From the NCBI GenBank assembly GCA_002269645.1, contig NIVC01002561.1:1-51712 (forward strand): a DNA stretch of 51,712 nucleotides. The letters run 5' to 3'. The notes under the pieces were generated by a model. That model was not told where the DNA came from and ran no database searches. It saw nothing but the letters and a program-made list of their open reading frames with translations. How positions within the stretch are numbered: the first letter of the stretch is position 1; each line of letters opens with the position of its first letter. Source of the stretch: Macrostomum lignano. Its lineage: Eukaryota. The translations under genes were made by a program, and so were the position numbers. This document shows, in pieces, positions 21,901 to 48,400 of this stretch.

Positions 21901-22489
21901 TCTTCAATCGAAATCAATCCATCAGCAGCTTATGAGTCACAAGCAAACAAGTGCATTCAAATCTATTTAATTAAGTGAACAGTTTCATAAATTATAGACT
22001 TTATATTTACCTGGCATAAGTGTGCATTAGTGAATGTTAAACACTAAAGACCATTTATAATTTGGGTTGTTAGAGATCAGAGCCTAGTATTGCACACTTT
22101 GATTAACTCTTATATTGGCTATAAACATTAGGCAACTTCCGTATCATTCAAATTCACTCTGTCTGAATATTTGCTTTGATTTAATATAATGATGTATGTA
22201 TATTGTAATTTATATCAATTACTATTTTTACATTGGGCAGCAACTTCTGTTATAATTCTGTATTGATTCTGGTTATTACGAGCGCAGAAACCAGAATTCT
22301 GACTTGTGTCGTTAATTTATGCTGTTGTTAAAATGTTCTGACATATGCTTTGTATACTACTGCTCTCTGCTGAACGTCTCGCAAATTCAATTATTACTAA
22401 GGGGATTCAATTATTATGGCCTGAATTCAGTGTAATTAAGTGACTTATTAGTTTTTTTAACACCTACACTTGATGCATTGCTGCCTCTG

Positions 22490-23357
22490 TTTCCTGACAC
22501 CCTGTTCTATCTCCCTGACACCCTGTCCTATCTGCCTGACACCCTGTTCTATCTCCCTGACACCCTCTCCTATCTCCCTGTCACCCTCTCCTATCTCCCT
22601 GACACCCTGTCCTATCTCCCTGACACCCTGTTCTATCTCCCTGACACCCTGTTCTATCTCCCTGACACCCTGTTCTATCTCCCTGACACCCTGTTCTATC
22701 TCCCTGACACCCTGTCCTATCTCCCTGACACCCTGTCCTATCTCCCTGACACCCTGTCCTATCTCCCAGACACCCTGTCCTATCTCCCTGACACCCTGTC
22801 CTATCTCCCTGACACTCTGTCCTATCTCCCTGACACCCTGTTCTATCTCCCTGACACCCTGTTCTATCTCCCTGACACTATGTCCTATCTCCCTGACACC
22901 CTGTCCTATCTCCCTGACACCCTGTCCTATCTCCCTGACACCCTGTCCTATCTCCCTGACACCCTGTCCTATCTCCCTGACACTATGTCCTATCTCCCAG
23001 ACACCCTGTCCTATCTCCCTGACACCCTGTCCTATCTCCCTGACACTCTGTCCTATCTCCCTGACACCCTGTTCTATCTCCCTGACACTATGTCCTATCT
23101 CCCTGACACCCTGTTCTATCTCCCTGACACCCTGTTCTATCTCCCTGACACTATGTCCTATCTCCCTGACACCCTGTCCTATCTCCCTGACACCCTGTTC
23201 TATCTCCCTGACACCCTGTCCTATCTCCCTGACACTATGTCTCATCTCCCTGACACCCTGTCCTATTCCCCTGACACCCTGTCCTATCTCCCTGACACCC
23301 TGTCCTATCTCCCTGACACCCTGTCCTACCTCCCTGACACCCTTTCCTATCTCCCAA
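22490..23357. repeat. 21-bp minisatellite CTATCTCCCTGACACCCTGT(C/T)
   Basis: About 41 units; source of the spurious ORFs YLPDTLS / ISLTPCP / REIGQGV. Confidence 0.97.
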
Positions 23358-23911
23358 TAAAAGTTCGACTTTATAATGGCTTCAAATTCAAACTAAATTA
23401 ATTGAGGTCTTGCACAGGCCACTAATACGACAGTTGAGCATAATTATATGATACAGCAATTGCGACTTAAATAAATATTATTTTATCTCTCTTACTCAAT
23501 GCGCCTTTGAAAAAAAATTAAACTTTTGTATCGCTTAACACCATATGCACTTTTCATTTGCAGTCGTCTGTCTGTGTCTATCTGTATCGCAAACAGTTTC
23601 ACTAATTTGTCTAGATGAATCATTTCAAAAATTACTTGTGTTCATTGCAAATGCCTATATCTGTCCTTTACTTAATTAAGTCACGTTAGTGATGCTTTTA
23701 TTAAACTATTATTCAACTTATTGCTATTCCTGCTATATTGCCTATGTATTGTACAGATTTCTAGTTGTACTAAAAATTATAAATTCACTCGAAAGCAATG
23801 CAACAAATGACAAACAAGTAACAAACAAACAAACTGCACATTTCCTCTGCTTTGTATTGCAATCGTTGATATTTATTTTATATCGGCATTTTTATGACGC
23901 CTTGGTCTTCG

Positions 23912-25297: not shown

Positions 25298-26715
25298 TCA
25301 CTGGTCATTGTTGACTCCGTCAGCGGCACCTTGAACCCCGTCAGTGGCCTCAGCCGCCTGCTCGTCCATCTGGCGCCGCTTTCGTCCACTTATAACCTCG
25401 TAGGAGACGATAATGACCAACATGGTGACCAGCTCGGCACCGATGCCCAGCAGGGGAGGCAGGAAGGCCTCGGGCTCTTGACGCGAAGGAACATGGTAGC
25501 CTGGTTGGCGCCAAAATCGTTGCTGGATTCGCAGGTCACGGTGCCCCTATCCAGTTCGTAGTCCATCTGGGACAGCAGCAGGGTCTCATTGCGGCTGTGG
25601 TTAAAGCTCGGCCGGAACTGCTGGCTCCAGCGAATGTCGCCGAGCGGATGGCCCATCACCTGGCAGGTGATGTTCACCGTTTCGGTGGGCCAAACGGCCA
25701 CGTCGAATCTGGGAGGGAGATTGCGGGAGATTGTCGCCAAAAGTGTCGTTAATTGTGTCGCTTAGTGTATCGCTAATTATGTCGCTTGGAGTGTCGCTAA
25801 TTATGTCGCTTGGGGTGAGGCTAATTATGTCGCTTGGAGTGTGGCTAATTATGTCGTTTGGAGTGTCGCTAGTATGTCGCTTAGTGCATCGCTAATTATG
25901 TCGCTTAGGGTGTCGCTAAATATGTCGCTTGGAGTGTCGCTAAGTATGCTGCTTGGATTGTACTTAAATGTTTTGCTAAATTTTTTGCTAGGTCTTGGAT
26001 TGTCGATAAATTAAATGTGTCATTTAGAGTCTGTCTCTTAGATGTCGCTTCAGTTGTCACAATTGTGTCCTTTTGATGATTGCACTAAAGGTGCTGCTAC
26101 GTGGAACCGTCGCTAAATATAGTACGCGATGGTTTCACTCCGTTTCAATTTGAAAGCTGCACGTACACTTCAGCGTCTGGCGCAGATGAAGGATGAGCAA
26201 GCACGATCCAGGCTTACCTGTCATTGCCGTTCACCAGCATGCGTATTATGGGTCTTGACTGGAAAGCGCGCTAGCCACAATTGTCTCCATGACGGCGCCA
26301 CCGCGCGCTCACCGGGGTCACGGAGACACTCGTAGACGCTGACGTCCTCGTTAATTGGACTGCGCAAGGTCAACGTGGAGATGCAGCTGACGCCCTCCTT
26401 GCACTCCGTGTGGATGCTGGCCCGGCTCTCCTTGACGCTGATGCTGCGGTTCCGGCCGGGCCTCCTCCAGTCGAAGCTCGCCTCCGCCAGGCTGACCGCC
26501 GCCTGACCCGGCTTCGGTGGCGACGTCTCCGCCCGGCACGTGATTACCAGCGGAGCGCGCTTGTCCAGCTTGTAGGCCTCGCCAAAGCCGCCGTCCGCCT
26601 GCTTCTGCAGATGGACCACCACGTTGTCCACGGTGACGTTGACCCGGCTGGCCGAAGCCGCTGCCGCCGTCAGCAGCAGCAGCGACGCGACTGCCTGCGC
26701 CAGAAGTTGCCGCAT
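25298..26715 (-). CDS. Basigin/neuroplastin (CD147-family)-like two-Ig single-pass membrane protein with apparent frameshift(s)
   Basis: Exon 26715-26313 has a signal peptide and Ig1 (ITC...FDW...STLTL...DVSVYEC); mini-exon 26258-26218 (SRPIIRMLVNGNDR); exon 25708-25298 has Ig2 (ITCQVMGHPLGDIRW...VTCESSNDFG). After a 1-nt shift near 25468 comes AFLPPLLGIGAELVTMLVIIVSYEVISGRKRR, matching the basigin-family TM signature (intramembrane Glu in GI.AE, then YE and a basic patch). A second frame problem lies near 26320. Confidence 0.75.
25745..25960. repeat. Degenerate ~24-bp repeat TGTCGCTAATTATGTCGCTTGGAG
   Basis: Recurring TGTCGCT motif in the basigin-like intron 25709-26217. Confidence 0.85.
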
Positions 26716-29070: not shown

Positions 29071-29382
29071 ATTGCTACACCGCCCCACCCAACTCAAGGT
29101 CAAATACTGGTTGGTTACCAACTACTGATTCCGGTAATTGATGATGGCCTGTGAAGAGATAATTTTGTGGCGAAACCGCGTCTACACATCCGGATATCGG
29201 CTTAGCATTAACCAGCTGTATAGGCGGTGGAGCTGATGCCGCAATTATCTAGACAGGCTGAGAGGCTCAGGCTTAGTTGAAATTCATTGTGAGTGCTTCT
29301 CTACTTGTAGTGTGCGCAGTGAATCGCCAAGTGTCGATGGATGCGCATATTGCACTACTTATAGTAGAATGACCAGAATCCA

Positions 29383-32706
<3,324 letters not shown>

Positions 32707-33146
32707 CAGCTGAAGAGGCCGACAGTGATGAATTGCCAGCTGCGGCAGGCGCTTTGAGCTGAGCCGAGAGTATTTTATTGGGTGCTCAGATACGCGCTGT
32801 GCACACTCAGCCATATGAAATCCAGAGGCCTCATCGAATGCTTGCACAGGCGGCGGCACCGAGGCCAGCATTTGCCTGCTTAATTTATGACCCGCCGGCA
32901 AGAAGGGCGAGAAATTTGAGCACCGCCTGCCTGACTGAGCAGGCCGCCAATCTGCAGGCCGGGCTGATCTCCAGCTGTCCTGGGATTAGCAGTCCCCCCG
33001 AGTGCAGGATCAGCTGGACGGGAGGATTAACTGGATTTGAGAGGCTCTCATTGTGAATAAGTAGGCGTATTTGTTCTTTTAGAAGATATTTATTTTCTTT
33101 TGTCTGCTCTTCGCTCATAAGCAGCTGAGCACTTTGCAGTGCGCTT

Positions 33147-33573
33147 GGATTAGCAATCCATTCTATTCCTGCATCCTTGTGGGCTAGATTAGCAATCCAT
33201 TCTACTCCTGCATCCTTGTGGGCTAGATTAGCAATCCATTCTACTCCTGCATCCTTGTGGGCTAGATTAGCAATCCATTCTACTCCTGCATCCTTGTGGG
33301 CTAGATTAGCAATCCATTCTACTCCTGCATCCTTGTGGGCTAGCAATCCATTCTGTTCCTGCATCCTTGTGGGCTAGATTAGCAATCCATTCTATTCCTG
33401 CATCCTTGTGGGCTAGATTAGCAATCCATTCTACTCCTGCATCCTTGTGGGCTAGATTAGCAATCCATTCTACTCCTGCTTCCTTGTGGGCTAGATTAGC
33501 AATCCATTCTACTCCTGCTTCCTTGTGGGCTAGATTAGCAATCCATTCTACTCCTGCATCCTTGTGGGCTAGA
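33147..33573. repeat. 39-bp minisatellite, copy 2 (same unit and orientation as 14245-14495)
   Basis: About 11 units, one of them truncated. Confidence 0.95.
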
Positions 33574-34515
33574 TGGGTCATAAACCGGCAGTCAATACTA
33601 GCCAAATCTGCATGAGCAGTTGCTCCGTATCCGAAAGCATAAAATTTCCCATTTCTATCACCGAGATACTACCACCTCTATATTACAGGCTAGTTGGGCA
33701 CTGAGAGTCGTAAAAGCCCCCACAGTTTTATTAACAATAGCACTAGCCCTCCCTGAGGCACGTAACGCATGCCTGTCACACAGGAATGAAAAGTCGGTCG
33801 CGTATTTTGGTTATTTCGGCTTTTTTTCCAGCGCTGAAGATCTCCCAGCGCTTTCTCTCCCCTCTCCATCCAATTTTTTAGCTTCTCCGAAGAAAATCTT
33901 CTCCGGCAGCAATCTTCAGTGCTCCAGGTAGTGACGGAGTGGAAAGGGAAAGAGGAAGAAGAAAGAAATGGGAATTTTGTCGGCCGCTCCTCCACCGTAC
34001 GCGCCAATCTCCCAGATCTCCTAGCCGCCCGCCTGTCCTCAATCGACCTCGCCCCTCGCCCCCACTTCTTACCCCTGCGCCGCCCTTCCCAACCGGCCCT
34101 CAAAAAAGCCACTGACACCGCAGAGAAGAATTATTGTAGAGTGCGCGGGTGAACGGCTTGGAGCTAGAGGGTACAAAGCACCGCGCAGCCCCCTACGCTC
34201 CAGCAGAGACTGGGAGTGCGAGACAGACGTCCCTAGGCTTGGCTAGTAGCGGCAAAAGAGGGCAGACCTCTCTCAAGATTTGGGGGAGGGGGGGGCAGCC
34301 AACCAATGGAACAGTGCACTGGCTTCTCTGAGCCAGTAACAGCAAGGCTCATGCTTTTTTGGTAGCGTCGGTGGAGCAATGCAAGCAGACCCGCTTCCCC
34401 TCATCTCCATAAATCGATGTCACAGCCTCATGCTCAAAGCCTTGGCAACTCAGCTGCGTGGGCACAGACTAAAGTAACACTTTAAGCTAGAACCCTGCAC
34501 CAGCGGTCAGTTGCC

Positions 34516-37170
34516 ATGCACAATTGCAACGGTAGCGCAGACCTGCTGGCTCGTTGCCAGGCCACTTGGCTGGCTCAACCAGCCGAAGCTGCTGCCGTGG
34601 TCAACGGGGTCTGGAAACGAATCGACTCGACGATCTTGTCGTCGTCGTCGTCGGATTTGTCGGCGCCAGCGCCGGCGCCTGCATCGCCGACTCCGCGCAG
34701 GCGGCGCGCCTGGCCGACCGTCAGCGTGTTCGTCTCCTCGGCGCTGGCCGACTTCGCTGACGAGCGCGACCGCCTCTCTCGGCACGTCTTCCCCGACCTG
34801 CGCGACTGGTGCGAGGCGCGGCGCCTGGCGCTGGACGAGTGCGACCCGCGCTGCGGCCTGGCGCCGGGCGACTCGGACCGGGCGCACCTGGACCTGCTCG
34901 GCCAGGCGGGCGGCTGTTGCGTCTTCCTCGGCCTGGTCGGCCACCGCCTGGGCCCCGAAGTCAGCGAGACGGAGCTGGCGGCCACCGGCTTGCCCGCCGG
35001 CTGCTCAACGGATCTGGCCGAGGCGCTGAGCTGTGGCGCTCTGGATCCGTCGTCGAGGCGCTGCGCTGCCGCGCTTTTCCTGCTGCTGATGGACGACGAC
35101 AGCAATGACGACGGCGGAGCAGCGACGGCCCAGGCTGCTCGGTATCGACTGGAGATCGCCAGTCGCCTGCCTGCCAGTCGAGTGCTGCAGTACTCGCGCT
35201 CGGCTGCCGACAGCCTCGACAGCTTCGAAGCCTGCGTCCTGGAGCAGCTCAAGCGAGTCGTCTCCGAGCAGTTTCCATCGGCGACGGCGCCCTTCGACGT
35301 CACGCTGACCACCGAGATCAGCGACTCGAACGAGGCGCACATCGGCTACCTGCAGTCGCTACTGGAGACCGACAGCCACACTCCCGCCACCATAGCAGGC
35401 CAGGAGCGCTGCCTCAGCCTGCTCACCAACTTCGTGGAGACTGGCGAGTTGTCCATGGCTGACTTTCACCTTTTTGGCGACTCGGCCGACCACATCGCCT
35501 TCGGCCTGCCCGGCGTCAAGTCCGTGGTGGTGTCCGGCGACCCCGGCGCCGGCAAGTCAACCATGTTGGCCAGGCTCGGCGCCGCCTTCCTCGACCGGCG
35601 CGGATTCGACGTGCTGGCGCATTTTGCCCAACTGTCGCCGGCCTCGAACGATCGGCGAACTTTGCAGCGCAAGATGAAGGCCTTCCTGCGCGGCCAGCTG
35701 ACCGAGGCGGAGGCTGCCCGTCTTGGCGACGAGCAGGCGACCCGCAGCGTCTCGGAGCTGTTCAACTCCATCATGAGCGCCAAGCGGACCATGCTCATCC
35801 TCATCGACGCGTTCGAGTGCTTCTACGAAGTGTCCCACGTCGGCGAGCTCCTGCCAGTCGCCTGGCCGCAGAACATCCGCTGTGTGGTCTCCTGCCGTCG
35901 GCGCGATCTTGACCGCTGCTTCAGCGAGCGCAGCGTCTGCCTTTACGAGCTGCAGCCGCTGGAACCCGCCGCTCAGGCGCTGGTCTGCCGAGGCCGGCTC
36001 GGCGAGGACTGGAGCAGCGAACTGGCCGACGCCCTGCTCGGCGTCAGGGCAGGCAGCGGCGCGGCGGCACCGGCAGCGGCCGCCAACCCGCTCTGGCTGG
36101 TCGAAGCCTGCGGCGAGGTGCGCCGCTCCGGCCCGGCCGCTGCTGCCGGCCTTCCCGGCGGGGCGCGCGACCTGCTTCTCTCTGTGGCCACCCGCCTACT
36201 GGCCGAGGAGGACGCGGACGGGTCCCTGGCCGCTTTGCTCGCTCTCGCCTGCGTGGCCCGAGTCGGACTCTGGGAGCGGCACGTCCGCTTGTTGCTGCGC
36301 TTCGTCGTCGAATATCGAGCCGCTTCGCCGACCGAAGCGTCGGAGGTGTCGCCTCCTACGCTGTCGCTCCAGCCGCTGCCGCTGACCGACTACCGGCGGC
36401 TGCTCCGCCTGGCGCGGCCGTTCCTGCGTCATATTCGGCGCGAATCCTCGGCGCTCGCCTATCGGCACGAGCTGGCGCGCTCGGCCGCCGCCCAGGCGCT
36501 GCAGCTGGTGGACAGTCCGGAGCGGGCCAAGCGCTGGCACAGCCTGGCCGTCGACTTCATCCTGCTGGCCGAGCGGCTCGGCTTCGGCTGCGCCTACCTG
36601 GCCAGGGACCTGCCGTTCCACCTGTACTGGAGCGACCGGCGGTCCGAGCTGCACGCCCTGCTGCAGGCCGGCGGCGGCTCCCCCGTCAGTGGCTCGCCGC
36701 AGCATCGGTCGCGGGTGCCGCACCAGACAGCCAGCGGCGTTTACAGCTCCTGGCGCTGCCGGGTGCCCAAAGTTGCGGCGGACAAGTCGCAGCCGGTGGC
36801 GTCGGCTTCCGGCTCCGCGCCGCGCGGCCTGGTCGCCTGCCTCGAATGCGCCGAACAGCCTGGCGCCAATGCTGAGCGCCAGCCGCGGGTCAGGTGCTGC
36901 ATTTACTGCGGCCAGGCGCTGGCGATGAGCAGGGCCGGTGGCGCCGTGCCTGCGCTCACCTGTGGCCAGCACCTGGCGCCGCCGGACGAGCAGCCCAGGT
37001 GCTGGTTCTGCAGCTCGGCAGCGGGAGCCCAGCCGGCCCAGCTGCTGGTGTGCAACTTCTGCAACAGCGCGGCCAGTTCCTACCTGTGCTACCTGCCAGT
37101 GCTGGAGACTGATCCGCAGTTTAGCCAGGTGGTGAGGAACCAGACCAAGAAGTTTGGCCTGCAGTGGTGA
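34516..37170 (+). CDS. Intronless 884-aa STAND-class ATPase: DUF4062 + NACHT-like P-loop (TEP1/NWD-type) + C-terminal Cys-rich Zn-binding region
   Basis: Long GC3-rich ORF. VSVFVSSALADFADERDRLSRHVFPDLRDWC...LDECDPRCG...FLGLVGHRLG...VSETEL (~34720-34977) fits DUF4062. Walker A GDPGAGKST at 35536, Walker B LILIDAFE at ~35794, YLARDLPFHL typical of the TEP1/NWD helical region. C-terminal CxxC clusters at 36757-37089. Confidence 0.88.
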   Translation: MHNCNGSADLLARCQATWLAQPAEAAAVVNGVWKRIDSTILSSSSSDLSAPAPAPASPTPRRRRAWPTVSVFVSSALADFADERDRLSRHVFPDLRDWCEARRLALDECDPRCGLAPGDSDRAHLDLLGQAGGCCVFLGLVGHRLGPEVSETELAATGLPAGCSTDLAEALSCGALDPSSRRCAAALFLLLMDDDSNDDGGAATAQAARYRLEIASRLPASRVLQYSRSAADSLDSFEACVLEQLKRVVSEQFPSATAPFDVTLTTEISDSNEAHIGYLQSLLETDSHTPATIAGQERCLSLLTNFVETGELSMADFHLFGDSADHIAFGLPGVKSVVVSGDPGAGKSTMLARLGAAFLDRRGFDVLAHFAQLSPASNDRRTLQRKMKAFLRGQLTEAEAARLGDEQATRSVSELFNSIMSAKRTMLILIDAFECFYEVSHVGELLPVAWPQNIRCVVSCRRRDLDRCFSERSVCLYELQPLEPAAQALVCRGRLGEDWSSELADALLGVRAGSGAAAPAAAANPLWLVEACGEVRRSGPAAAAGLPGGARDLLLSVATRLLAEEDADGSLAALLALACVARVGLWERHVRLLLRFVVEYRAASPTEASEVSPPTLSLQPLPLTDYRRLLRLARPFLRHIRRESSALAYRHELARSAAAQALQLVDSPERAKRWHSLAVDFILLAERLGFGCAYLARDLPFHLYWSDRRSELHALLQAGGGSPVSGSPQHRSRVPHQTASGVYSSWRCRVPKVAADKSQPVASASGSAPRGLVACLECAEQPGANAERQPRVRCCIYCGQALAMSRAGGAVPALTCGQHLAPPDEQPRCWFCSSAAGAQPAQLLVCNFCNSAASSYLCYLPVLETDPQFSQVVRNQTKKFGLQW

Positions 37171-37524
37171 CGTTCGCAATCTGTCAATCTTATTATTTTC
37201 CTGTTCACATCGCTAATTGCAAGCTGTCTGGCTTCTAACACACACAACAAAGTGTTTTCGTGCTTGCCAGTTATTGCCTGAAAGTTGCTTTCTTGCTTGT
37301 GTTTTCCTCGCGTTTTCTCTCTCCCACTTCCGGATCCCTTGTGAGCTCAGGCCTGAGGGAAAAATTGGCACCACTTAGCGCAAATAGCAAATTTAGTCGA
37401 TGCGATAGAACTGATTCTGCTTGCAAGTAATAAATACTACTCAGCTCGTGCATGGTTATGGCTATTTAGTTAAATCAATGGTTGTTGATTTATTTTTTTA
37501 ATAACAAAATTAATGAAAAAGTAA

Positions 37525-38130
37525 AGTTTACATTAGCCACACCCGAGCAATTCAATAGTTTTGTTCCTTATCTGAGTGTACATTAGCCACGCCCTAGCAA
37601 TCCAATAGTTTTCGTCCCTTATCTGAGTGTACATTAGCCACGCCCTAGCAATCCAATAGTTTTCGTCCCCATATTAGTGTACATTAGCCACGCCCGAGCA
37701 ATTCAATAGTTTTCATCCCCATCTGAGTGTACATTAGCCACACCCGAGCAATTCAATAGTTTTCGTCCCTTATCTGAGTGTAAATTAGCCACACCCGAGC
37801 AATTCAATAGTTTTCGTCCCTTATCTGAGTGTACATTAGCCACACCGAGCAATTCAATAGTTTTCGTCCCTTATCTGAGTGTACATTAGCCACACCCGAG
37901 CAATTCAATAGTTTTCGTCCCTTATCTGAGTGTACATTAGCCACACCCGAGCAATTCAATAGTTTTCGTCCCTTATCTGAGTGTACATTAGCCACACCCG
38001 AGCAATTCAATAGTTTTCGTCCCTTATCTGAGTGTACATTAGCCACACCCGAGCAATTCAATGACTTTCGTCACTATCTGACTGTACATTAGCCACGCCC
38101 AACTAATCCAATAGTTTTAGTATCCATCTG
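37525..38130. repeat. 51-bp minisatellite GTGTACATTAGCCACACCCGAGCAATTCAATAGTTTTCGTCCCTTATCTGA
   Basis: About 12 units. Confidence 0.95.
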
Positions 38131-38924
38131 AGTGCACATAAGCCAGAGTGTACAAAAATAAAAGGCAGCTTTCAATCATAATAAGAAGCTGCTATTTAAT
38201 GCTTTTTATAAACCGCATCTCCGTTCGTAGAAAATGGACACAGCAATGGCGTCATTCTACTGCCCTCAACTGGCTCGCAATGTCTCAAATTAGCTAAGAG
38301 GTATTCATTCCATAAGGCAACGCAAAAAACCGGCCCAGAAAAAGACAGAGGGTACACAAAGTCTTTCTTCTTGTTCTCGGGTTTCGGTCTTTTTGCCAAC
38401 ACTACAGCTGGCCTCCTTCCTGCCACAAGGCCAGAACAGGAACAGGCCTGATGGCGCCTCGTACTGACGTTTCCTTTCTTGTTAGACAGAATTTTTCTGT
38501 TGAAAAACTCCTACTTTTGCGCTGCCACTCCCCCTTCTTGCTGGATTTTTTCTCCGCGCGCTTTTTCAGCTGTCTGTCCCGCATCAGCGCTTCATTAGTT
38601 TGACCGCCTCCTCCCTCGCCTCTCCTCTCCAACGAGGGTGTGTTGTGCAACTCGACTTCCAAGCAGCATTGCGGCTGGAGTGGGAAAATTTTGGCGCTCG
38701 ATGACGAACGAAGATCAACGGCTGGGGCTGCACTTTATGATTTGCCTTGCCCTGCACTGCACGGATAACCATGTCTAATGAGGAAGGAAAAACGCCCATC
38801 TCTCCAGCTGCAAAGTACAAATCAAGTTTGCGAAAGCAGCAGTGAATCTTGTGTAGAAAGGGTTGGAGGCTTGCCCTAGATTTGCAAAGCTTAGAAAAGC
38901 CGCTAAACAAACTTTTCTATGATG

Positions 38925-39762
38925 TGTCTATCTGTGATGTGTCTTTCTGTGCTGTGTCTATCTGTGATGTGTCTTTCTGTGATGTGTCTTTCTGTGATGT
39001 GTCTTTCTGTGATGTGTCTTTCTGTGGTGTGTCGTTCTGTAATGTGTCTTTCCCTGATGTGTCTTTCTGTGATGTGTCTATCTGTGATGTGTCTTTCTGT
39101 GATGTGTCTTTCTGTGGTGTGTCGTTCTGTAATGTGTCTTTCCCTGATGTGTCTTTCTGTGATGTATCTTTCTGTGATGTATCTATCTGTGATGTGTCTA
39201 TCTGTGATGTGTCTATCTGTGATGTATCTTTCTGTGATGTATCTTTCTGTGATGTATCTTTCTGTGCTGTGTTTTTCTGTGGTGTGTCGTTCTGTAATGT
39301 GTCTTTCCCTGATGTGTCTTTCAGTGATGTATCTTTCTGTGATGTGTCTATCTGTGATGTGTCTTTCTGTGATGTGTCTTTCTGTGATGTGTCTTTCTGT
39401 GATGTGTCTTTCTGTGGTGTGTCGTTCTGTAATGTGTCTTTCCCTGATGTGTCTTTCTGTGATGTGTCTATCTGTGATGTGTCTTTCTGTGATGTGTCTT
39501 TCTGTGGTGTGTCGTTCTGTAATGTGTCTTTCCCTGATGTGTCTTTCTGTGATGTATCTTTCTGTGATGTATCTATCTGTGATGTGTCTATCTGTGATGT
39601 GTCTATCTGTGATGTATCTTTCTGTGATGTATCTTTCTGTGATGTATCTTTCTGTGCTGTGTTTTTCTGTGATGTGTCTATCTGTGATGTGTCTTTCTGT
39701 ACTGTGTCTTTCTATGATGTGTCTTTCTGTGAAGCGTCTTTCTGTAAAGTGTCTTTCTGTGC
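38925..39762. repeat. 15-bp minisatellite GATGTGTCTTTCTGT with a 390-bp higher-order duplication
   Basis: About 56 units. Variant units recur exactly 390 bp apart (39026/39416, 39116/39506, 39266/39656). Confidence 0.95.
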
Positions 39763-40548
39763 TGAAAAAATACTATAGCTAATGTAACCCAATTTTCAAC
39801 TTATCGAAGGAGACCTAGCTTTACATTTGGTCAAGGACCACGTGATTTACCCTGCCTGTATTATGTAAACAAAATGAAATCCCAATCTTTGAATCTGGCA
39901 CGAGTTGAGTGGCTACACATATTAGCACAGCAGCTATATTTGCACAGCTCACAGGGTTTCATCAGGCGCAGCTGGCCTCTCCCTCTCGACACTCGTATGC
40001 ACTCGCATTCGCCCACTTCGGACGCAAAAAGTATCAATTCTTTTTCGTTTTGCTCTTCTCATTCGCTCAAATGAATGCAGCTCGAGCCCTCCGCCGCTTC
40101 TGCTCTGCATTCTCAGCACAAATAACTACAGTGCTCACGAGTTTCTGTAACCTGACCGTTAGAATTTGCCCAGCAGCTTCAATGCTGCTTGTCTCTACGT
40201 AATAGTTGGTATTCAATTCTTTGCCACTAGCTATGCAAAATAACCTGGGCTCTGAATAAGCGCGTTGTCACTCTTATACCCACTTGGAGCTGCTCAGCTT
40301 AATTATCTTCTGTCCGTCTGTTGGCGCCCCGGCGCGTCACTGCCTGCCTGCGTGCCAACCTGCCCGTCCCTTCCATCGCTTGCATATTTTCAGTAATAAA
40401 GTGGCCTGATTATTCCAGCTGTCATGGCTGCAAGCTGGGTGCGGTACTGCAGTTAACAAAGTACTAATTAGTTGATGCACTGTTTTAACGAACAAATTAA
40501 TGTATTTTTTCTTGAGCTGCGGTTTACTCGTAAAGCTATGGGGCACTC

Positions 40549-41030
40549 TGGTGCTGGCGCCCCTGGTGCTGGCGCCCCTGGTGCTGGCGCCCCTGGTGCT
40601 GGCGCCCCTGGTGCTGGCGCCCCTGGTGCTGGCGCCCCTGGTGCTGGCGCCCCTGGTGCTGGCGCCCCTGGTGCTGGCGCCCCTGGTGCTGGCGCCCCTG
40701 GTGCTGGCGCCCCTGGTGCTGGCGCCCCTGGTGCTGGCGCCCCTGGTGCTGGCGCCCCTGGTGCTGGCGCCCCTGGTGCTGGCGCCCCTGGTGCTGGCGC
40801 CCCTGGTGCTGGCGCCCCTGGTGCTGGCGCCCCTGGTGCTGGCGCCCCTGGTGCTGGCGCCCCTGGTGCTGGCGCCCCTGGTGCTGGCGCCCCTGGTGCT
40901 GGCGCCCCTGGTGCTGGCGCCCCTGGTGCTGGCGCCCCTGGTGCTGGCGCCCCTGGTGCTGGCGCCCCTGGTGCTGGCGCCCCTGGTGCTGGCGACCCTT
41001 GGTGCTGGCGACCCCTGGTGCTGGCGCCCC
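40549..41030. repeat. Perfect GC-rich 15-bp repeat GGTGCTGGCGCCCCT
   Basis: About 30 identical units plus 2-3 degenerate terminal units. Confidence 0.97.
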
Positions 41031-42449: not shown

Positions 42450-45400
42450 ATGGCACAACAAGGACCCCAGAAGTCGGCCATCATTGTAAGTCAGGCAACA
42501 AAGTTAGGCCTAGCGTCTAGACGCAGTCAAATTCAAGTTTTACATTCACGTTATGACGTTTGCTAGGCCTATATCGAAAGATATAGTACATAAAACATAG
42601 GCATCTATAGTCTCAGTTAACATTATTTATTTTAAAAAAATAAATGTATTAGTCATCTAATTATAGTACTAGGTACTAGGCCTACATCTATATTTTTTGG
42701 GGTGGGCATTTTTGCGACTTTCCCCTGCCCTGGTCCACCACAATTTACGGTGGCCAGATTGGCCAGGTCAGCCAGCAGTTGCGCATGTATGATTTTCAAA
42801 CTGTAGGCCTACTCAGTTTGTGCACGTAGCACTTGTTGAAGCTCTTGTTGTATCCCTAAAAATTAGGCTTAACATATCTAGCAGTTTTTTTTCCTTGCTG
42901 AAACTGAAACTTCATCAAACTTCAAATGTAAATAGATTCCACCATGACCAAAAAATTGAGGTAGCTAATAAAAATGTTTGCAATGTAGACATAGTTGCAA
43001 ACTGAGGAATGTACCTTATATACTTTGTGTTAGCAACAATGATTATCGCCAATCTTCAAGTTTCATTCGTTAAATTATTTTTTCAATGATTTCTGAACTA
43101 TCTTGCTCTCAGATGATTATTTTCGAGCTCTCCAGTGTACCCAGCCCTTTCCTAGCTGAGAAAGTAGCAGCTTTGTTAATATTAACCTCTAACGTACCAT
43201 AAAGCCAGAAATATAAGATGCAAACAAGCAAAGCTAACATGTAGCCATCAGTAAAGCGGTCACCTTGACGGAGCTGCAGCTGAAGTTGAGTGGCCGGACA
43301 ATTGGCACACATTTGCTGGTTGGCAATTAGATAGTATTTGGCCATCCAATTCATGGTATCCCTTGTTGTTGCCATAATCACAGCTAGTTCCCGCATTGTC
43401 AAGGTGATGTCACACAAAGCTGCAGCTGGTTGCACTTGTGCTACTGGTACAATAAAAGTGGGTGCCGCTGGTCATCCTGCTATAGTGTATTAGTCTTATA
43501 GTGTATTAGCTGCTTGTCTATTAACTGCTTATGATATTACTCCATGCCACTCCTAAAGCTGTGTACAATAGCATCTTTATTCCCCATAGACGTTCTTTGC
43601 TAAAATGCCACGTCAGTGAAAGCCACATCATCATTACGTTACCGTAATATGGGCCATAGACATTCCTTTGCCTACCAACGGCTTTACGGTACATTAGATA
43701 TATAATATTAACAAAGCTGCTACTTTCTCAGCTAGGAAAGGGCTGGGTACACTGGAGAGCTCGAAAATAATCATCTCAGAGCAAGATAGTTCAGAAATCA
43801 TTGAAAAAATAATTTAACGAACAAAACTTGAAGATTGCCTGATCATCATATAAAATAATGTTACTAAAAATGCTTAGCTAAAAGTAACAACTTGGCTTAA
43901 GCTTCTAAAGCAATGCCAATGCCAAGCCAGCATATTAAATAATTTCAAAAAAGGCACTATTAAGAAAGTATTGTTAATTGTTTTTAGCAAATGTTCTATT
44001 TTTTATAGTAGGCCTAACTGTAAAATAAGTTGAAATTTGCTAAGTCTATCAAACATATTTAGCTATTTTAAGTATTGCATAATAATAATATTATTGTTAT
44101 TATATTGTTTAAAAAATCTTTTTTTGCTTTGCATCACTTTTTGTCATTTTGTTCTGCCTCTCTCTGTTGTACATTGTTGTATACTAGGTCCATTTTGAAA
44201 TTTACCTTCTATTGTGTAAAAACACCCTATTTACCCAGTGACCTATAGATGAATACAATCCACTTCGGTAACAGCCATTTCAGTAACAGCCACTTCGGTA
44301 ACAAAAAATGAATACTTTGGTAACTGCCACTTTGGTAACAAAGCAGATTTACAACTGTCAACACTATATTTTTATGATAATTAGGTTTGGAAATAATTAG
44401 TTTATTAATTAACATTTCAAATGTCTTATTGCACATATCATTAAACTTTCTAGTTAAGCTATATTATACTTTGTTTAAACTTGCGCAGTAATTTTGTGAA
44501 ACATTTAAAGGCAAATAAAATTAAGCAAAGCGAGCTAGCTATATAGCTCCCATACATTCATTGAAATGGAATTTTTTAAAATAATTAATGAAGAAAAAAG
44601 TAGATTCTGTGATTTTAAGTCATTATTCGCTAACTAGATCAGAGATTCCAATGTACATGGTCACAAAATTTGGTCAATTACAGGATGTCTCGGGTGCACA
44701 TAATCTGACTCATCCGGAAATTAAAATAGATTGGTTAAAACACTTTAAAACAAGTTAAACACATGCAGGTACACATGTGTTTTGTCATTCTTTCTTTAAA
44801 GTTTGTTCGCACATCCTTTCGAAGCATATCAATTAATGCATATTATATTATTCTCACTTGTTACCAAAGTGGCTGTTACCGAAATGGCTGTTACCAAAGT
44901 GGACTGTTACCCCTATAGATATATTCTACATTATAGACATTGCCCATTGTCTAGAAGGTGGCCTTTATGCCAGAAAATTCTGGCATATTTTTGTTCTCAT
45001 TGATAATCTTAGTATACATTTAATATATATAATTTTTAGGCTCAATATTAAGTCTACACATAACACAGTTGGCATACAAAAATGGCCAAGTTCAGGTCTA
45101 GTATATATGGTGTAGTTAAATATTCACTATATTAAATATAGTGAATATTTTGTCATAACAAAAGCTCTTTTAAAAATAATTGGAAACAAAAATGAGAAAA
45201 CTAGCCATACTAGTATGGCCCCCCTTTGGGGTGCCCAATAAGCAAGGAGCAAAAATAGTTCATAGAAAACAATTAAAAAGCACAATTTCCTAAAAACCAA
45301 TTTCTTCTTCACTTTTAAAAATTGCCTTATTTATTTAAAATTGTCACAGACACTGATATTTGTTATAAATCCTTTTTTTTCTAAAATTAACAAATAGACA

Positions 45401-48400
45401 ACAGATAGCAAGCATCCCATAGATAGCAAGCATCCCATAGATAGAAGCATCCACCCAGATAGCAAGAATCCTATAGATAGCAAGCATCCCATAGATAGAA
45501 GCATCCACCTAGATAGCAAGCATCTTGCAGATAGCAAGAATCTCTAAATAGCAAGCATCCCTGGATAGAAAGAATCCCATACATGTAGCCAATACCCCTC
45601 TTCCAAATAGCAATATCCCCCTCGAGAGCAAGCATCCACCACATACATGCCCAACCTCAAAATTTTACCCATCTGGTGCAACTTAGTTTTGTCCAGATTT
45701 GTGACTTAGTTCCTCTCGATTGCAACTTAGTTTTCACTTTTTATGACTTTTCTTGCTTTCTTTTCTTTTCTTTTCTTTTTCTTTCTTTTTCCTCTTTCTC
45801 CTCTCTCTTTTCTTTCTCCTTTCTTTTACTTTTCTCTTCCTCTCCTTACTTTCTTCTCCCAAATTTTTGTTTTTCCCATTTTTCATTTTGTGACACCTTG
45901 GCTCGTGGCCATTTCCATCTGGTTCTAGGACAGGTTAGACAGGTGTTGGGCATGTATGATCCACCAGACAGCAAGTAGCTAGTGCAAATGTTACCTCTGT
46001 TAATGCAATAATCACTTTCTCAGGTTGTGCAATAATCTGTCTTAGCTAACACAATAATATCTTTTTTAGACAGCACAATAATCAACTTCTCAGCTAGTGA
46101 AATAATCCTTTACTCATCAAGTCCAAAAATTGATGTCTCAGCTAGTGCAATAGCCCTTTCTAGTGCAATATTCCTTGGTTTATCTAGTGCAACATTCCTT
46201 ATTATCAAAGTACAATGATCTTTGACTTATCAAGTGCAATAATCATTGGCTTTTCAAATGCAATATTCCTTGGTTTATCAAGCATAGTATCCTAGGTTTA
46301 TCAAGTGCAATAATCCTTAGGTTATCAAGTGCAATAATCCTTGGTTTATCAAGTGCAATAATCCTTAGTTTATCAAATGCAATAATATTTGATTTATCAA
46401 GCATAGTAATCCTTGGTTTATCAAGTGCAATAATCCTTGGTTTATCAAGTGCAATAATCCTTAGTTTATCAAATGCAATAATATTTGGTTTATCAAGCAT
46501 AGTAATCCTTGGTTTATCAAGTGCAATAATCCTTGGTTTATCAAGTGCAGTAATCCTTGGTTTATCAAGTGCAGTAATCCTTGGTTTATCAAGTGCAGAA
46601 ATCCTTGGTTTATCAAGTGCAGTAATCCTTGGTTTATCAAGTGCAGTAATCCTTGGCTTATCAAGTGCATTAATCCTTGGTTTATCAAGTGCAGTAATCC
46701 TTGGCTTATCAAGTGCAATAATCATTGGCTAATCAAGTGCAATAATCCTTAGTTTATCAAGTGCAGTAATCCTTTGTTTATCAAGTGCAGTAATCCTTTG
46801 TTTATCAAGTGTAGTAATCCTAGGTTTATCAAGGGCCATAATCCAGGTCTTTTTAATTAGTCCTTTAATAAAAGCATTCAATAAAAATTATGCTACTTTT
46901 ATTTACACTACTAAGATTTGAACCCAGGTTGCTGCATTAGCAGTCCAGTGTGTTCACATTTAGGCTAGCTCTCATTGAATTATAAATGAATTTATAGCAT
47001 TTATAATTCAACACTCACACCAAGTTAAGTTAAATGAAGGTTCCTATACTAGGTAGGTACATAGTTTTGATTTTTAGTATATTGGATTAACAAAATTTCT
47101 AAGAAAAAAACAAAATTAAAACAAAAAATGAACAATAACTGAAATTTAGCAAAGAACAGTCATTTTAAAGTTCAGTACAACTCCAGTATTTCTAAAATTA
47201 TATTTTCTTTAAAAATATTGGCATGTAAACAACTTTAGACTTGGCATAAAAAGAATTAATTTTACATCAGCCTAAAATTGAAAACATAGGAAATTTTATT
47301 CCGGCGTACACCTGCCATGATCTGGACTATGGGACACTGCCAACATGTCTGTAGGCTCTAAAATTATAGAAATTGTGGCCATGTCTATAAGTATAGACCT
47401 AAGCACTATTAGAGACATGGCTGCCAGTTCTATAAGTTTCTGCATTATAGACACAGTTGCCATATCCAGGCACAGATACAGAAAATTTTTGAAGGTGGGG
47501 GCAAGCTATACCAAGCACTGCAACCCAATATTAGAAAATAGACCTAGTATAGTTTAGAGTTTTTTTCTTATAAATTTATTATTGTAATACACAAATGGAA
47601 GCATTAAACTTTTTTTTAAAATAAAAAGTTCCTGTACACAGTGGTATTGTCATTGCTTGTTTTAAGATTCACATATTCACACGTAACAGCCTGCAGTTAC
47701 AATCCGGATAGCCTGTACACCCGCCCCAGATACCAGATGAGCCGCCAGTGCTGCCGCTGGAGTCGCTCAGCTACCCGGTTCACTACGCGCCCTACATCTC
47801 CAACGTGGTCATCCCCTACGGCCTCGTGTTGGATCGCATCGAGCGCATGGCAGAAGAGATCAGCCAGGACCTGCAGGCCAGCTGCGATCCTGAGGAGGGT
47901 CTGCACGCAATCTGCGTTCTCAAGGGCGGATTCAAGTTTTTTACCGATCTCACAGATCGGATGCAGAGCAAGAACTGCTGTCACAAGTCTTTGAAGATTT
48001 CTAGTCATTTCATTCGCGCTAGAAGCTACCAGGTTTGCTCACGGGAGATTTCTATCAGCAGAAATGATTTCATGCAGTCCTCAGAATGGACTGTTAGTAC
48101 TTGCCTAGAACTCGGACTCACGACTTCAAGGTCGGGGATTCGATTCCCGATACCGCTAGAACAATCTGTGTCCTTGATCAAGACGCTTTACTCTGCATTG
48201 CTTCAGTTCTCCGAGTTATCAGTAGAAAAATAATACATAAGCTATTTTATAAATATAAAGGCAGCTGAAATGACTTTGATAAGCTTAGAAGCCCAAGCAT
48301 GCAGGCGTAAACAGCTTGCTAATTGGTTCAGCCTTAATGTACATTAGTCAATCCACTGAAATGTACATGGTAGATCTAGGCTGGAATTCCAAGAAAGACA

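Follow-up and report, generated by a model that had tools for sequence, protein, structure and literature searches.

Only just, in 2026, have proteins that join a DUF4062 domain to a NACHT ATPase been recognised as widespread in animals, where they are the counterpart of NADase defence proteins in bacteria. In three 2026 preprints (including bioRxiv 10.64898/2026.09.04.749371 and 10.64898/2026.05.01.722283) DUF4062, renamed NIR, has been shown to be a TIR-like NADase that acts in the bacterial anti-phage systems Avs2, Swarozyc, Evangelion, Vulcan and Vesta and also in human TEP1, and NIR-NLR-like proteins were reported in 88% of metazoan genomes. For TEP1, these preprints identify E1008 as the catalytic residue, with contributions from R908 and R976, and report an activity that rises with concentration. 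None of them mentions a zinc or cysteine tail. Here we describe a gene of the neopolyploid flatworm Macrostomum lignano that encodes a protein of this group ending in such a tail; it occupies positions 34516..37170 of the forward (+) strand of contig NIVC01002561.1 (assembly GCA_002269645.1), the whole of which, 51,712 nucleotides in length, was analysed and is referred to below as the window.

Our proposal, to which we assign a probability of about 0.6 jointly for family placement, zinc-module model and mechanism, is that the window gene belongs to an ancient and unnamed metazoan family, sister to the NPHP3/TTC41/TEP1-like NIR-NACHT proteins. Judged from its domains, the protein appears to be a compact NLR-like (STAND) molecule in which a NIR NADase domain, a NACHT ATPase and a winged-helix/helical region are followed by a basic 12-ligand module predicted to bind three zinc ions. 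It can be placed by sequence in the animal NIR-NACHT NLR-like group, minus the repeat sensor. An earlier reading of the DNA made without database searches (the sequence-only reading) had already given the open reading frame (ORF), the order and local contexts of the ligands and an effector-switch-sensor (NLR/STAND) architecture, and had taken DUF4062 to be a nucleotide-processing effector. The first three are as it gave them, and the last is now backed by the NADase activity shown in bacteria and in human TEP1 in the 2026 preprints. It had also considered the architecture undescribed, and no published description of the architecture or of the tail was found in a literature search that was incomplete, so that a description may exist elsewhere.

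Domain order of the window protein

The gene is a complete single-exon coding sequence of 884 amino acids plus stop (34516..37170, +), opening with ATG and intact, as indicated by the ORF list, a second contig and the family alignment, which spans residues 27-882. An in-frame stop lies 10 codons upstream of the ATG, and a conserved motif ahead of the NIR domain (AVVNGVWKRIDSTI, 34594..34635, +; family consensus VxxCWxxID, with W33 invariant) supports the annotated start. The second M. lignano contig carries a homeologous copy with an identical protein and one synonymous nucleotide difference, and neither homeolog contains a frameshift or premature stop in 2,655 nt. A hexamer resembling a polyadenylation signal, AATAAA (37429..37434, +), stands 259 nt past the stop codon and may function as one.

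The N-terminal part, approximately residues 65-265 (34708..35310, +), is a degenerate DUF4062/NIR domain of the TIR-like NADase type. In the window copy the Pfam DUF4062 model gives a weak match (residues 71-151, E=0.033, 14.8 bits against a cut-off of 24.7), while canonical family members exceed this cut-off with 32.9-41.7 bits and also pass the NACHT and NPHP3_N thresholds. Residues 65-146 match the crystallised TIR-like/DUF4062 domain of human TEP1 (PDB 11gz_A, E=5.6e-5), which is the best PDB match of the protein. On this mapping, in TEP1 crystal-chain numbering, E169 (codon 35020-35022) corresponds to the catalytic E1008 and does not vary among 12 family members, and R144, equivalent to R976, is likewise retained in the window copy and invariant in the family; the position of R908 is Ala in the window copy and variable across the family. 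F72 is also retained. Other parts of the domain have changed, with DLRWGV replaced by DPRCGL, the GWIP segment deleted and about 10 residues lost after the FFLRD strand.

The NACHT P-loop NTPase that follows (about residues 331-490; 35506..35985, +) passes the Pfam cut-off of PF05729 (residues 337-486, 30.2 bits against 26.7). Its Walker A motif, GDPGAGKS, lies at residues 341-348 (35536-35559), where G344, G346 and K347 are invariant in the family, and its Walker B motif, LILIDAFE, falls within residues 425-440. The helical/winged-helix part of the nucleotide-binding and oligomerisation (NOD) module occupies residues 491-746 (35986..36753, +) and is divergent in the window copy; the family invariants of this region are W527, E534, R536, G539, R560 and H651 (codon 36466-36468), and the sister protein P0013 has an HTH_NWD1 match in the equivalent region. 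No Pfam repeat model for WD40 or TPR matches the window protein, in which the zinc module comes after the helical domain instead.

This C-terminal module (residues 747-858; 36754..37089, +) contains 12 predicted zinc ligands, enough for a predicted three zinc ions, defined by their positions, their invariance and the AlphaFold model. They are C748 (in WRC), the pairs C775-C778 (CLEC), C795-C798 (CCIYC, with an extra C794), C816-H819 (CGQH), C829-C832 (CWFC) and C846-C849 (CNFC), referred to below as knuckles #1 to #5, and finally C858 (LCY). The tail, 111 amino acids long, thereby holds 12 of the 33 Cys/His ligand candidates of the window protein. It is followed by an extension of 26 residues (859-884, YLPVLETDPQFSQVVRNQTKKFGLQW; 37090..37167, +), delimited by the tail alignment and of low predicted confidence. 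Such a post-ligand extension (26-30 residues, ..PVLETD.QF....R.QTK....) is common to two M. lignano paralogs only, the window protein and P0004, and is absent from other family members.

An animal family and its eroded member

Word-indexed searches with the full protein, a tail profile and a family profile yielded almost nothing of use, and the family was recovered solely by searching 1.84 billion representatives exhaustively with HMMER, which returned 1,769 matches at E<=1e-3, mostly generic DUF4062-NACHT proteins. Among the top 152 matches the complete module is found in 14 representatives, always at the extreme C-terminus of proteins of about 840-990 amino acids. They come from Macrostomum, Branchiostoma, the gastropods Nucella, Lymnaea, Haliotis and Lottia, the hemichordate Glandiceps, the newt Lissotriton, the jellyfish Rhopilema, Hydra and the nemertean Tubulanus, and a crinoid contributes a truncated model. 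The sequence-only reading had spoken of an invertebrate pathway, which is too narrow since the newt has the family. In databases the members are called 'telomerase protein component 1-like', 'TPR repeat-containing protein DDB_G0287407-like' or hypothetical. The window protein has one close paralog, P0004 (M. lignano Mlig012051), with 41% identity over the full length (59% divergence).

In an alignment of 13 tails drawn from Cnidaria, Spiralia and Deuterostomia, the sole invariant columns are R747 and the 12 ligands. The 13 tails were chosen by a regular expression requiring the ligand pattern, so there is some circularity in the conservation of all 12 Cys/His ligands in 13/13 homologs, which the sequence-only reading had made a condition of its interpretation. 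The pattern did not select for R747, for the C-terminal position, for the inheritance of the module all or none or for its basic net charge (+7 to +10 in the family, +4 in the window copy). Natural ligand-loss variants, sought as a means of inferring zinc pairing, numbered 0 among 169 sequences, the module being present entirely or not at all. Scans of the tail or the whole protein with Pfam, NCBIfam and PADLOC disclosed no family covering the tail: each of the 13 tails stays below the threshold of every Pfam family model, and PADLOC models match neither the window protein nor a canonical family member. The tail is a real conserved domain, and the structural model predicts that it forms one compact unit rather than beads on a string.

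The module always stands directly behind the NOD module. At the same point the sister proteins P0013 and P0023 have TPR_NPHP3, and the nearest tail-less relatives, from Mytilus and sea urchins, continue with NPHP3-type TPRs. By comparison of these sequences the zinc module can be placed in the sensor position directly after the NOD, where, as the sequence-only reading had noted, relatives bear WD40 or TPR repeats. Two further observations concern relatives of the window protein. P0007 (Nucella) and P0008 (Lottia) contain internal tandem peptide duplications within the NIR domain, which may be real and lineage-specific or an artefact of assembly or gene model. Many DUF4062-NACHT-WD40 relatives of about 1,500 residues (P0017, P0018, P0024, P0044, P0069, P0093, P0114, P0122 and P0130) end in a conserved zinc ribbon of another kind, CPxCG...(30-40 aa)...CPxC..L.FNPF, whose pattern is unrelated to the 12-ligand tail.

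Within this family the window copy is an eroded paralog. In a leave-one-out count over near-invariant family columns it deviates in 28 of 58 NIR columns, whereas every other member deviates in 1-8 of about 50; in the helical region the figures are 14 of 24 against 1-6 of about 18. In the NACHT domain, on the other hand, it deviates in 3 of 13 columns (0-4 of 11-14 in every other member), and in the zinc tail in 0 of 13 (0-1 of 13-14). The coding sequence is an island of high guanine-plus-cytosine content (GC 69.6%, and 85.4% at third codon positions, GC3) between flanks of 41-43%, the paralog having a GC3 of 70.7%; the protein is enriched in Ala, Gly, Pro and Leu and depleted in Lys, Asn, Ile, Tyr and Phe. 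By sequence the window copy has the features of a GC-driven, fast-diverged, degenerate paralog, much of whose divergence is attributed to GC-biased drift.

It might be argued from these losses that the window gene is a functionless duplicate in decay, with an ORF held open by its extreme GC and not by selection. The high GC3 and the drift of its amino acids towards Ala, Gly, Pro and Leu would fit this, the long antisense ORFs in the same stretch indicate that stops are rare there, and selection on the gene is not measurable from two genomic copies that are so alike, differing by 1 nt only. We nevertheless consider such decay unlikely, because all 13 near-invariant tail positions, Walker A and B, H651 and the catalytic Glu are kept despite 59% divergence from the paralog, because both homeologs are uninterrupted and because the erosion is domain-specific and not uniform, which is the signature of continued selection on NACHT and tail. 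Selection has evidently continued, as far as sequence comparison can tell, on the P-loop, H651, E169 and all zinc ligands, and their retention argues against a dead gene. The window copy may depend on or modulate its canonical paralog Mlig012051, in a sensor-only or modulatory role.

Fold of the zinc module

The sequence-only reading had likened the tail to PHF5A/Rds3, whose ligand order, one single Cys, five CxxC and one single Cys binding three zinc ions, was verified in PMC5458519; the PHF5A sequence used here was verified against the PDB. In PHF5A the pairs #1+#4, #2+#5 and #3 with the first and last Cys share a zinc ion each, and this pairing gives a trefoil knot of which Rds3 is the only structural relative in the PDB as reported (PMC5458519). 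PHF5A contacts RNA backbones.

A single-sequence AlphaFold prediction of the tail was useless (predicted local distance difference test, pLDDT, 41.5). With the 13-sequence alignment, AlphaFold2 reached a pLDDT of 72.4 and a predicted template modelling score (pTM) of 0.67, and every one of the five knuckles falls in blocks of 75-91. When this model was searched blind with Foldseek against about 350,000 PDB chains, the top match was chain D of 9k1w, superposed with a root-mean-square deviation of 3.4 Å over 84 columns at 14% identity (about 12 residues), all other matches lying at 5.6-27 Å. This chain can only be PHF5A, the other components of the complex being SF3B1, SF3B3 and SF3B5 (which we take to be 86 amino acids long), and some 12 identities is the number expected if the ligands superpose. 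We read the secondary structure of the model, with a helical turn at #1, knuckles at #2 and #4 and a helix at #5, as agreeing with the description of PHF5A, and likewise the isolated bridges at residues 8/12 and 118/122, which would pair antiparallel and place C748 next to C858. Foldseek against viral structures gave nothing comparable to the tail model.

Alignment of sequence profiles points partly the same way. With hhalign, knuckles #2-#5 of the tail align in register to #2-#5 of PHF5A (probability 29%, score 25.8, E=6e-4 in a single comparison). PHF5A decoys with fixed Cys positions and all other residues shuffled average 15.0 ± 3.3, and 1 in 100 reaches this score. When the knuckles of PHF5A are kept and its linkers permuted, the decoys average 19.6 ± 4.1 and 11 of 100 reach it (p ~0.11); the similarity lies in generic zinc-knuckle context and not in PHF5-specific spacing. 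Family spacers run 14-26, 11-18, 13-17, 7-12, 12-25 and 5-8 against 11, 3, 12, 8, 10 and 9 in PHF5A, so that the second half overlaps or approaches PHF5A while the first half differs, above all between #1 and #2 (11-18 against 3).

Besides the linker-permuted decoys, several results weigh against a PHF5-like module. Neither the Foldseek match (E=3.3, probability 0.11, template modelling score 0.31 query-normalised and 0.41 target-normalised) nor the hhalign alignment is statistically significant, only 3 of the 5 AlphaFold2 models exceed a pLDDT of 65, on a shallow alignment of 13 sequences, and the resemblance to PHF5A may be no more than AlphaFold reproducing the only fold with this ligand order on which it was trained. 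The Pfam PHF5 model (PF03660) has no match to the window tail at E<=10; it matches one of the 13 tails, below threshold (19.5 against 26.7 bits) and shifted by two knuckles, with #4, #5 and the last Cys of the tail on #2, #3 and C58 of PHF5. Against human PHF5A, BLASTP aligns the window tail out of register with E=0.19. Searched against the PDB, the 13-tail profile has no PHF5 chain among its matches at E<=10, and this profile and the window tail give instead weak matches to TraR, eS27 and GATA-type C4 fingers on #1-#2 (YbiI, E=0.0067 for the window tail). In the Lottia protein P0008 the tail duplicates its [RC..CxxC..CxxCG] unit, as if this were autonomous. What stands of the earlier comparison is the ligand order, the top structural match and the hhalign register; the statistics of Foldseek and hhalign, the Pfam model and the first-half spacers do not bear it out, and the window protein cannot be shown to belong to the PHF5 family, whose profile, spacing and context features it lacks.

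In its strong form, the sequence-only reading would have an NLR capture a true homolog of PHF5/Rds3, which would then sense RNA or serve as an integrated decoy for an agent that targets SF3b. This would explain a ligand order shared but for one Cys-to-His change, the in-register alignment whose score beats 99 of 100 shuffles that hold only the Cys positions, the first rank of PHF5A in the blind structural search and a basic tail as expected of an RNA-contacting surface. Such a capture is nonetheless quite improbable, given that the Pfam model matches neither the window tail nor any but one of the 13 tails, and that one sub-threshold and off register, and given the absence of any PHF5 chain among the profile's PDB matches, the linker-permuted decoys that score equally and the #1-#2 spacer. 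Nor was a counterpart open to comparison recognised for the Y36 pocket of PHF5A or for its SF3B1-binding context; the decoy role, proposed in the sequence-only reading, has found no support of any kind. Descent of the tail from PHF5 is, in our estimation, of similarly low probability.

A stronger contender, although the odds remain against it, is that the tail consists of ordinary zinc ribbons or treble clefs arranged sequentially in a lineage-specific way (for example #1+#2, #3+#4 and #5 with a single Cys) without interleaving, its likeness to PHF5A being due to the counting of CxxC motifs and to AlphaFold bias. The long and variable spacers, the insignificant Foldseek statistics and the equal scores of permuted-linker decoys fit this idea, as do the duplicated [RC, #1, #2] unit of P0008 and the weak #1-#2 matches to DksA/TraR-type and eS27/GATA-type C4 fingers. 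The DksA/TraR-type finger (YbiI, PDB 2KGO; TraR, 5W1S) shares CxxC-x(16-18)-CxxC and similar flanks with #1-#2; it differs in that it covers 4 of the 12 ligands with a marginal match and in that the tail has no coiled-coil, and the match is probably generic zinc-ribbon similarity. Against sequential ribbons, the pTM and the high pLDDT of all five knuckles suggest one rigid domain, PHF5A remains the best superposition by a wide margin, P0008 may be a gene-model artefact, as it has suspicious tandem duplications elsewhere, and the module is inherited all or none, with its first and last single Cys invariant, as expected if the two ends share one zinc site. It has also been considered that the tail is an output or recruitment module, such as an E3-like cross-brace, an adaptor or a localisation domain, and not a sensor. 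Sub-threshold RING matches (zf-C3HC4_3) in 3 of 13 tails, with a best E of 0.027, and RING, LIM and IDOL structures among the low-ranked Foldseek matches favour it, but the sister families bear a TPR/WD40 sensor at that position and this family already has an N-terminal effector, so that we regard such a role as improbable. The specific folds are excluded: the RING, B-box or LIM identity against which the sequence-only reading had set its own comparison is contradicted by the spacers, since the His-to-Cys spacer is 7-12 in 13/13 tails against the 2-3 that defines RING, the smallest spacer between ligand groups is 5 where LIM demands exactly 2 and no Pfam LIM model matches the 13 tails, and B-box fails on spacing.

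Among these models, the PHF5-like zinc pairing (#1+#4, #2+#5, #3 with both ends) is the best single one, with odds we would put a little short of even on the structural prediction. The broader idea, in which the module would represent a second family with the PHF5A/Rds3 knot fold, this one outside the spliceosome, and would serve as the sensor, plausibly for RNA or nucleic acid, of an ancient NADase-NLR, with the window paralog perhaps sensor-only or regulatory, is put forward tentatively and as somewhat less probable than the pairing itself.

Proposed mechanism, locus and relation to known systems

The mechanism proposed for the NIR-NACHT-zinc protein is drawn by analogy with Avs2-NIR, Apaf-1/NLRC4 and TEP1. 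In STAND proteins the C-terminal sensor keeps the NOD closed until its ligand binds, and the closed forms of Apaf-1 and NLRC4 have a winged-helix His in contact with ADP. Similarly, the zinc module and the winged-helix H651 would hold the NOD closed and ADP-bound until a ligand docks on the basic zinc module. Our best guess for this ligand is nucleic acid or else the acidic surface of a protein, and the uniform positive charge of the tails together with the gripping of RNA backbones by PHF5A makes nucleic acid the first candidate. Docking would release the lock, upon which the NACHT domain would exchange nucleotide and oligomerise, and the NIR domains thus assembled would hydrolyse NAD+; TIR-like NADases are known to be activated by proximity. 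Three points speak against this scheme or its reach. We infer a sensor role for the tail solely from its position. Human NWD1, NWD2 and NPHP3 have no NADase activity in vitro, TEP1 alone being active among the human members, so that a conserved Glu is no guarantee of activity. Finally, the loss of many conserved NIR residues makes the NADase output of the window copy itself doubtful.

The origin of the gene raised two other possibilities. The GC island, together with bacterial DUF4062-NACHT-TPR matches in the word-indexed search, had suggested bacterial contamination or horizontal transfer; this was ruled out because the closest relatives are metazoan, the gene lies between animal genes on two contigs and the paralog has the same immunoglobulin-domain (Ig) gene as neighbour. 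A chance ORF in GC-rich DNA was ruled out by the above-threshold NACHT match and the full-length family alignment. Long ORFs on the antisense strand and in other frames of 34516-37170 (up to 327 amino acids, 36196..37179, minus) are taken as by-products of composition and not as genes, because GC is about 70% there.

In the window, the Ig-domain gene lies upstream at about 25390-26240 (-) and a phosphoribosyltransferase gene downstream at about 42450-47170 (+). At the locus of Mlig012051 (L003) a minus-strand Ig-domain gene likewise lies just upstream (1941-2489, -), and the paralog is also single-exon; the shared neighbour and the single-exon state of both paralogs suggest an old segmental duplication. 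The surroundings are rich in repeats. A microsatellite of perfect (TCTA)n repeats, about 3.3 kb long (29420-32703), creates a spurious ORF of 1,133 residues (29312..32713), and four minisatellite arrays flank the gene (33148-33574, 37525-38145, 38914-39761 and 40548-40999; units of 39 bp x11, 51 bp x12, 15 bp x56 and GC-rich 15 bp x30), with repeat-encoded pseudo-ORFs on both strands. An ORF at 22478-23398 (+), lying where the GC skew is strong (-0.40), gives a PaaX-like, ferredoxin-like Pfam match of E=1.5e-24 without any individually significant stretch, most likely an artefact of repeats or low complexity.

The zinc-tail family is of interest as the smallest and most tractable case among the NIR-NACHT proteins, its presumed sensor being 110 residues and not a large repeat array. 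It has been conserved for an estimated >600 million years in animals, among them the experimentally accessible Hydra, Macrostomum, amphioxus and newt. If the PHF5A fold proved true, this would be the first use of the knotted fold outside the spliceosome, with RNA as candidate ligand, and a new sensor class for animal NIR-NACHT proteins; even with another fold, the tail is a conserved domain for which neither a Pfam model nor a published description was found.

With PHF5A/Rds3 (an SF3b subunit; PDB 5SYB, 2K0A; PMC5458519) the tail shares 12 ligands in the order one, five CxxC-type pairs and one, similar spacers in the second half and a basic surface. It differs in its CxxH at knuckle #3, in the much longer spacers of its first half and in being fused to an NLR in every member, whereas PHF5A is a free SF3b subunit of about 110 amino acids.

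With TEP1, NWD1, NWD2, NPHP3 and TTC41 the window protein shares an N-terminal NIR domain with its catalytic Glu followed by the NACHT and a winged-helix/helical NOD. Unlike the TEP1/NWD group, it has no WD40/TPR, TROVE or vWA and ends in a zinc module of about 110 residues; the zinc-tail proteins have only about 850-990 amino acids, and the window NIR is eroded below the Pfam threshold. The nearest tail-less relatives, NPHP3/TTC41-like NIR-NACHT-TPR proteins (Mytilus CAC5362199, sea-urchin XP_011662164), agree with it in the N-terminal motifs, the NIR, the NACHT/NPHP3_N and the helical region up to the LPxHL helix, and differ in having TPR_NPHP3/TPR_12 repeats where the zinc module stands. 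The bacterial Avs2-NIR and other NIR-effector STAND proteins (Avs, Vulcan, Vesta, Swarozyc, Evangelion) have the same order of effector, STAND NTPase and C-terminal sensor and are activated by ligand-induced assembly; their sensors, in contrast, consist of TPR-like or HEAT repeats or of accessory domains with phage proteins as ligands, and the zinc-tail family is metazoan.

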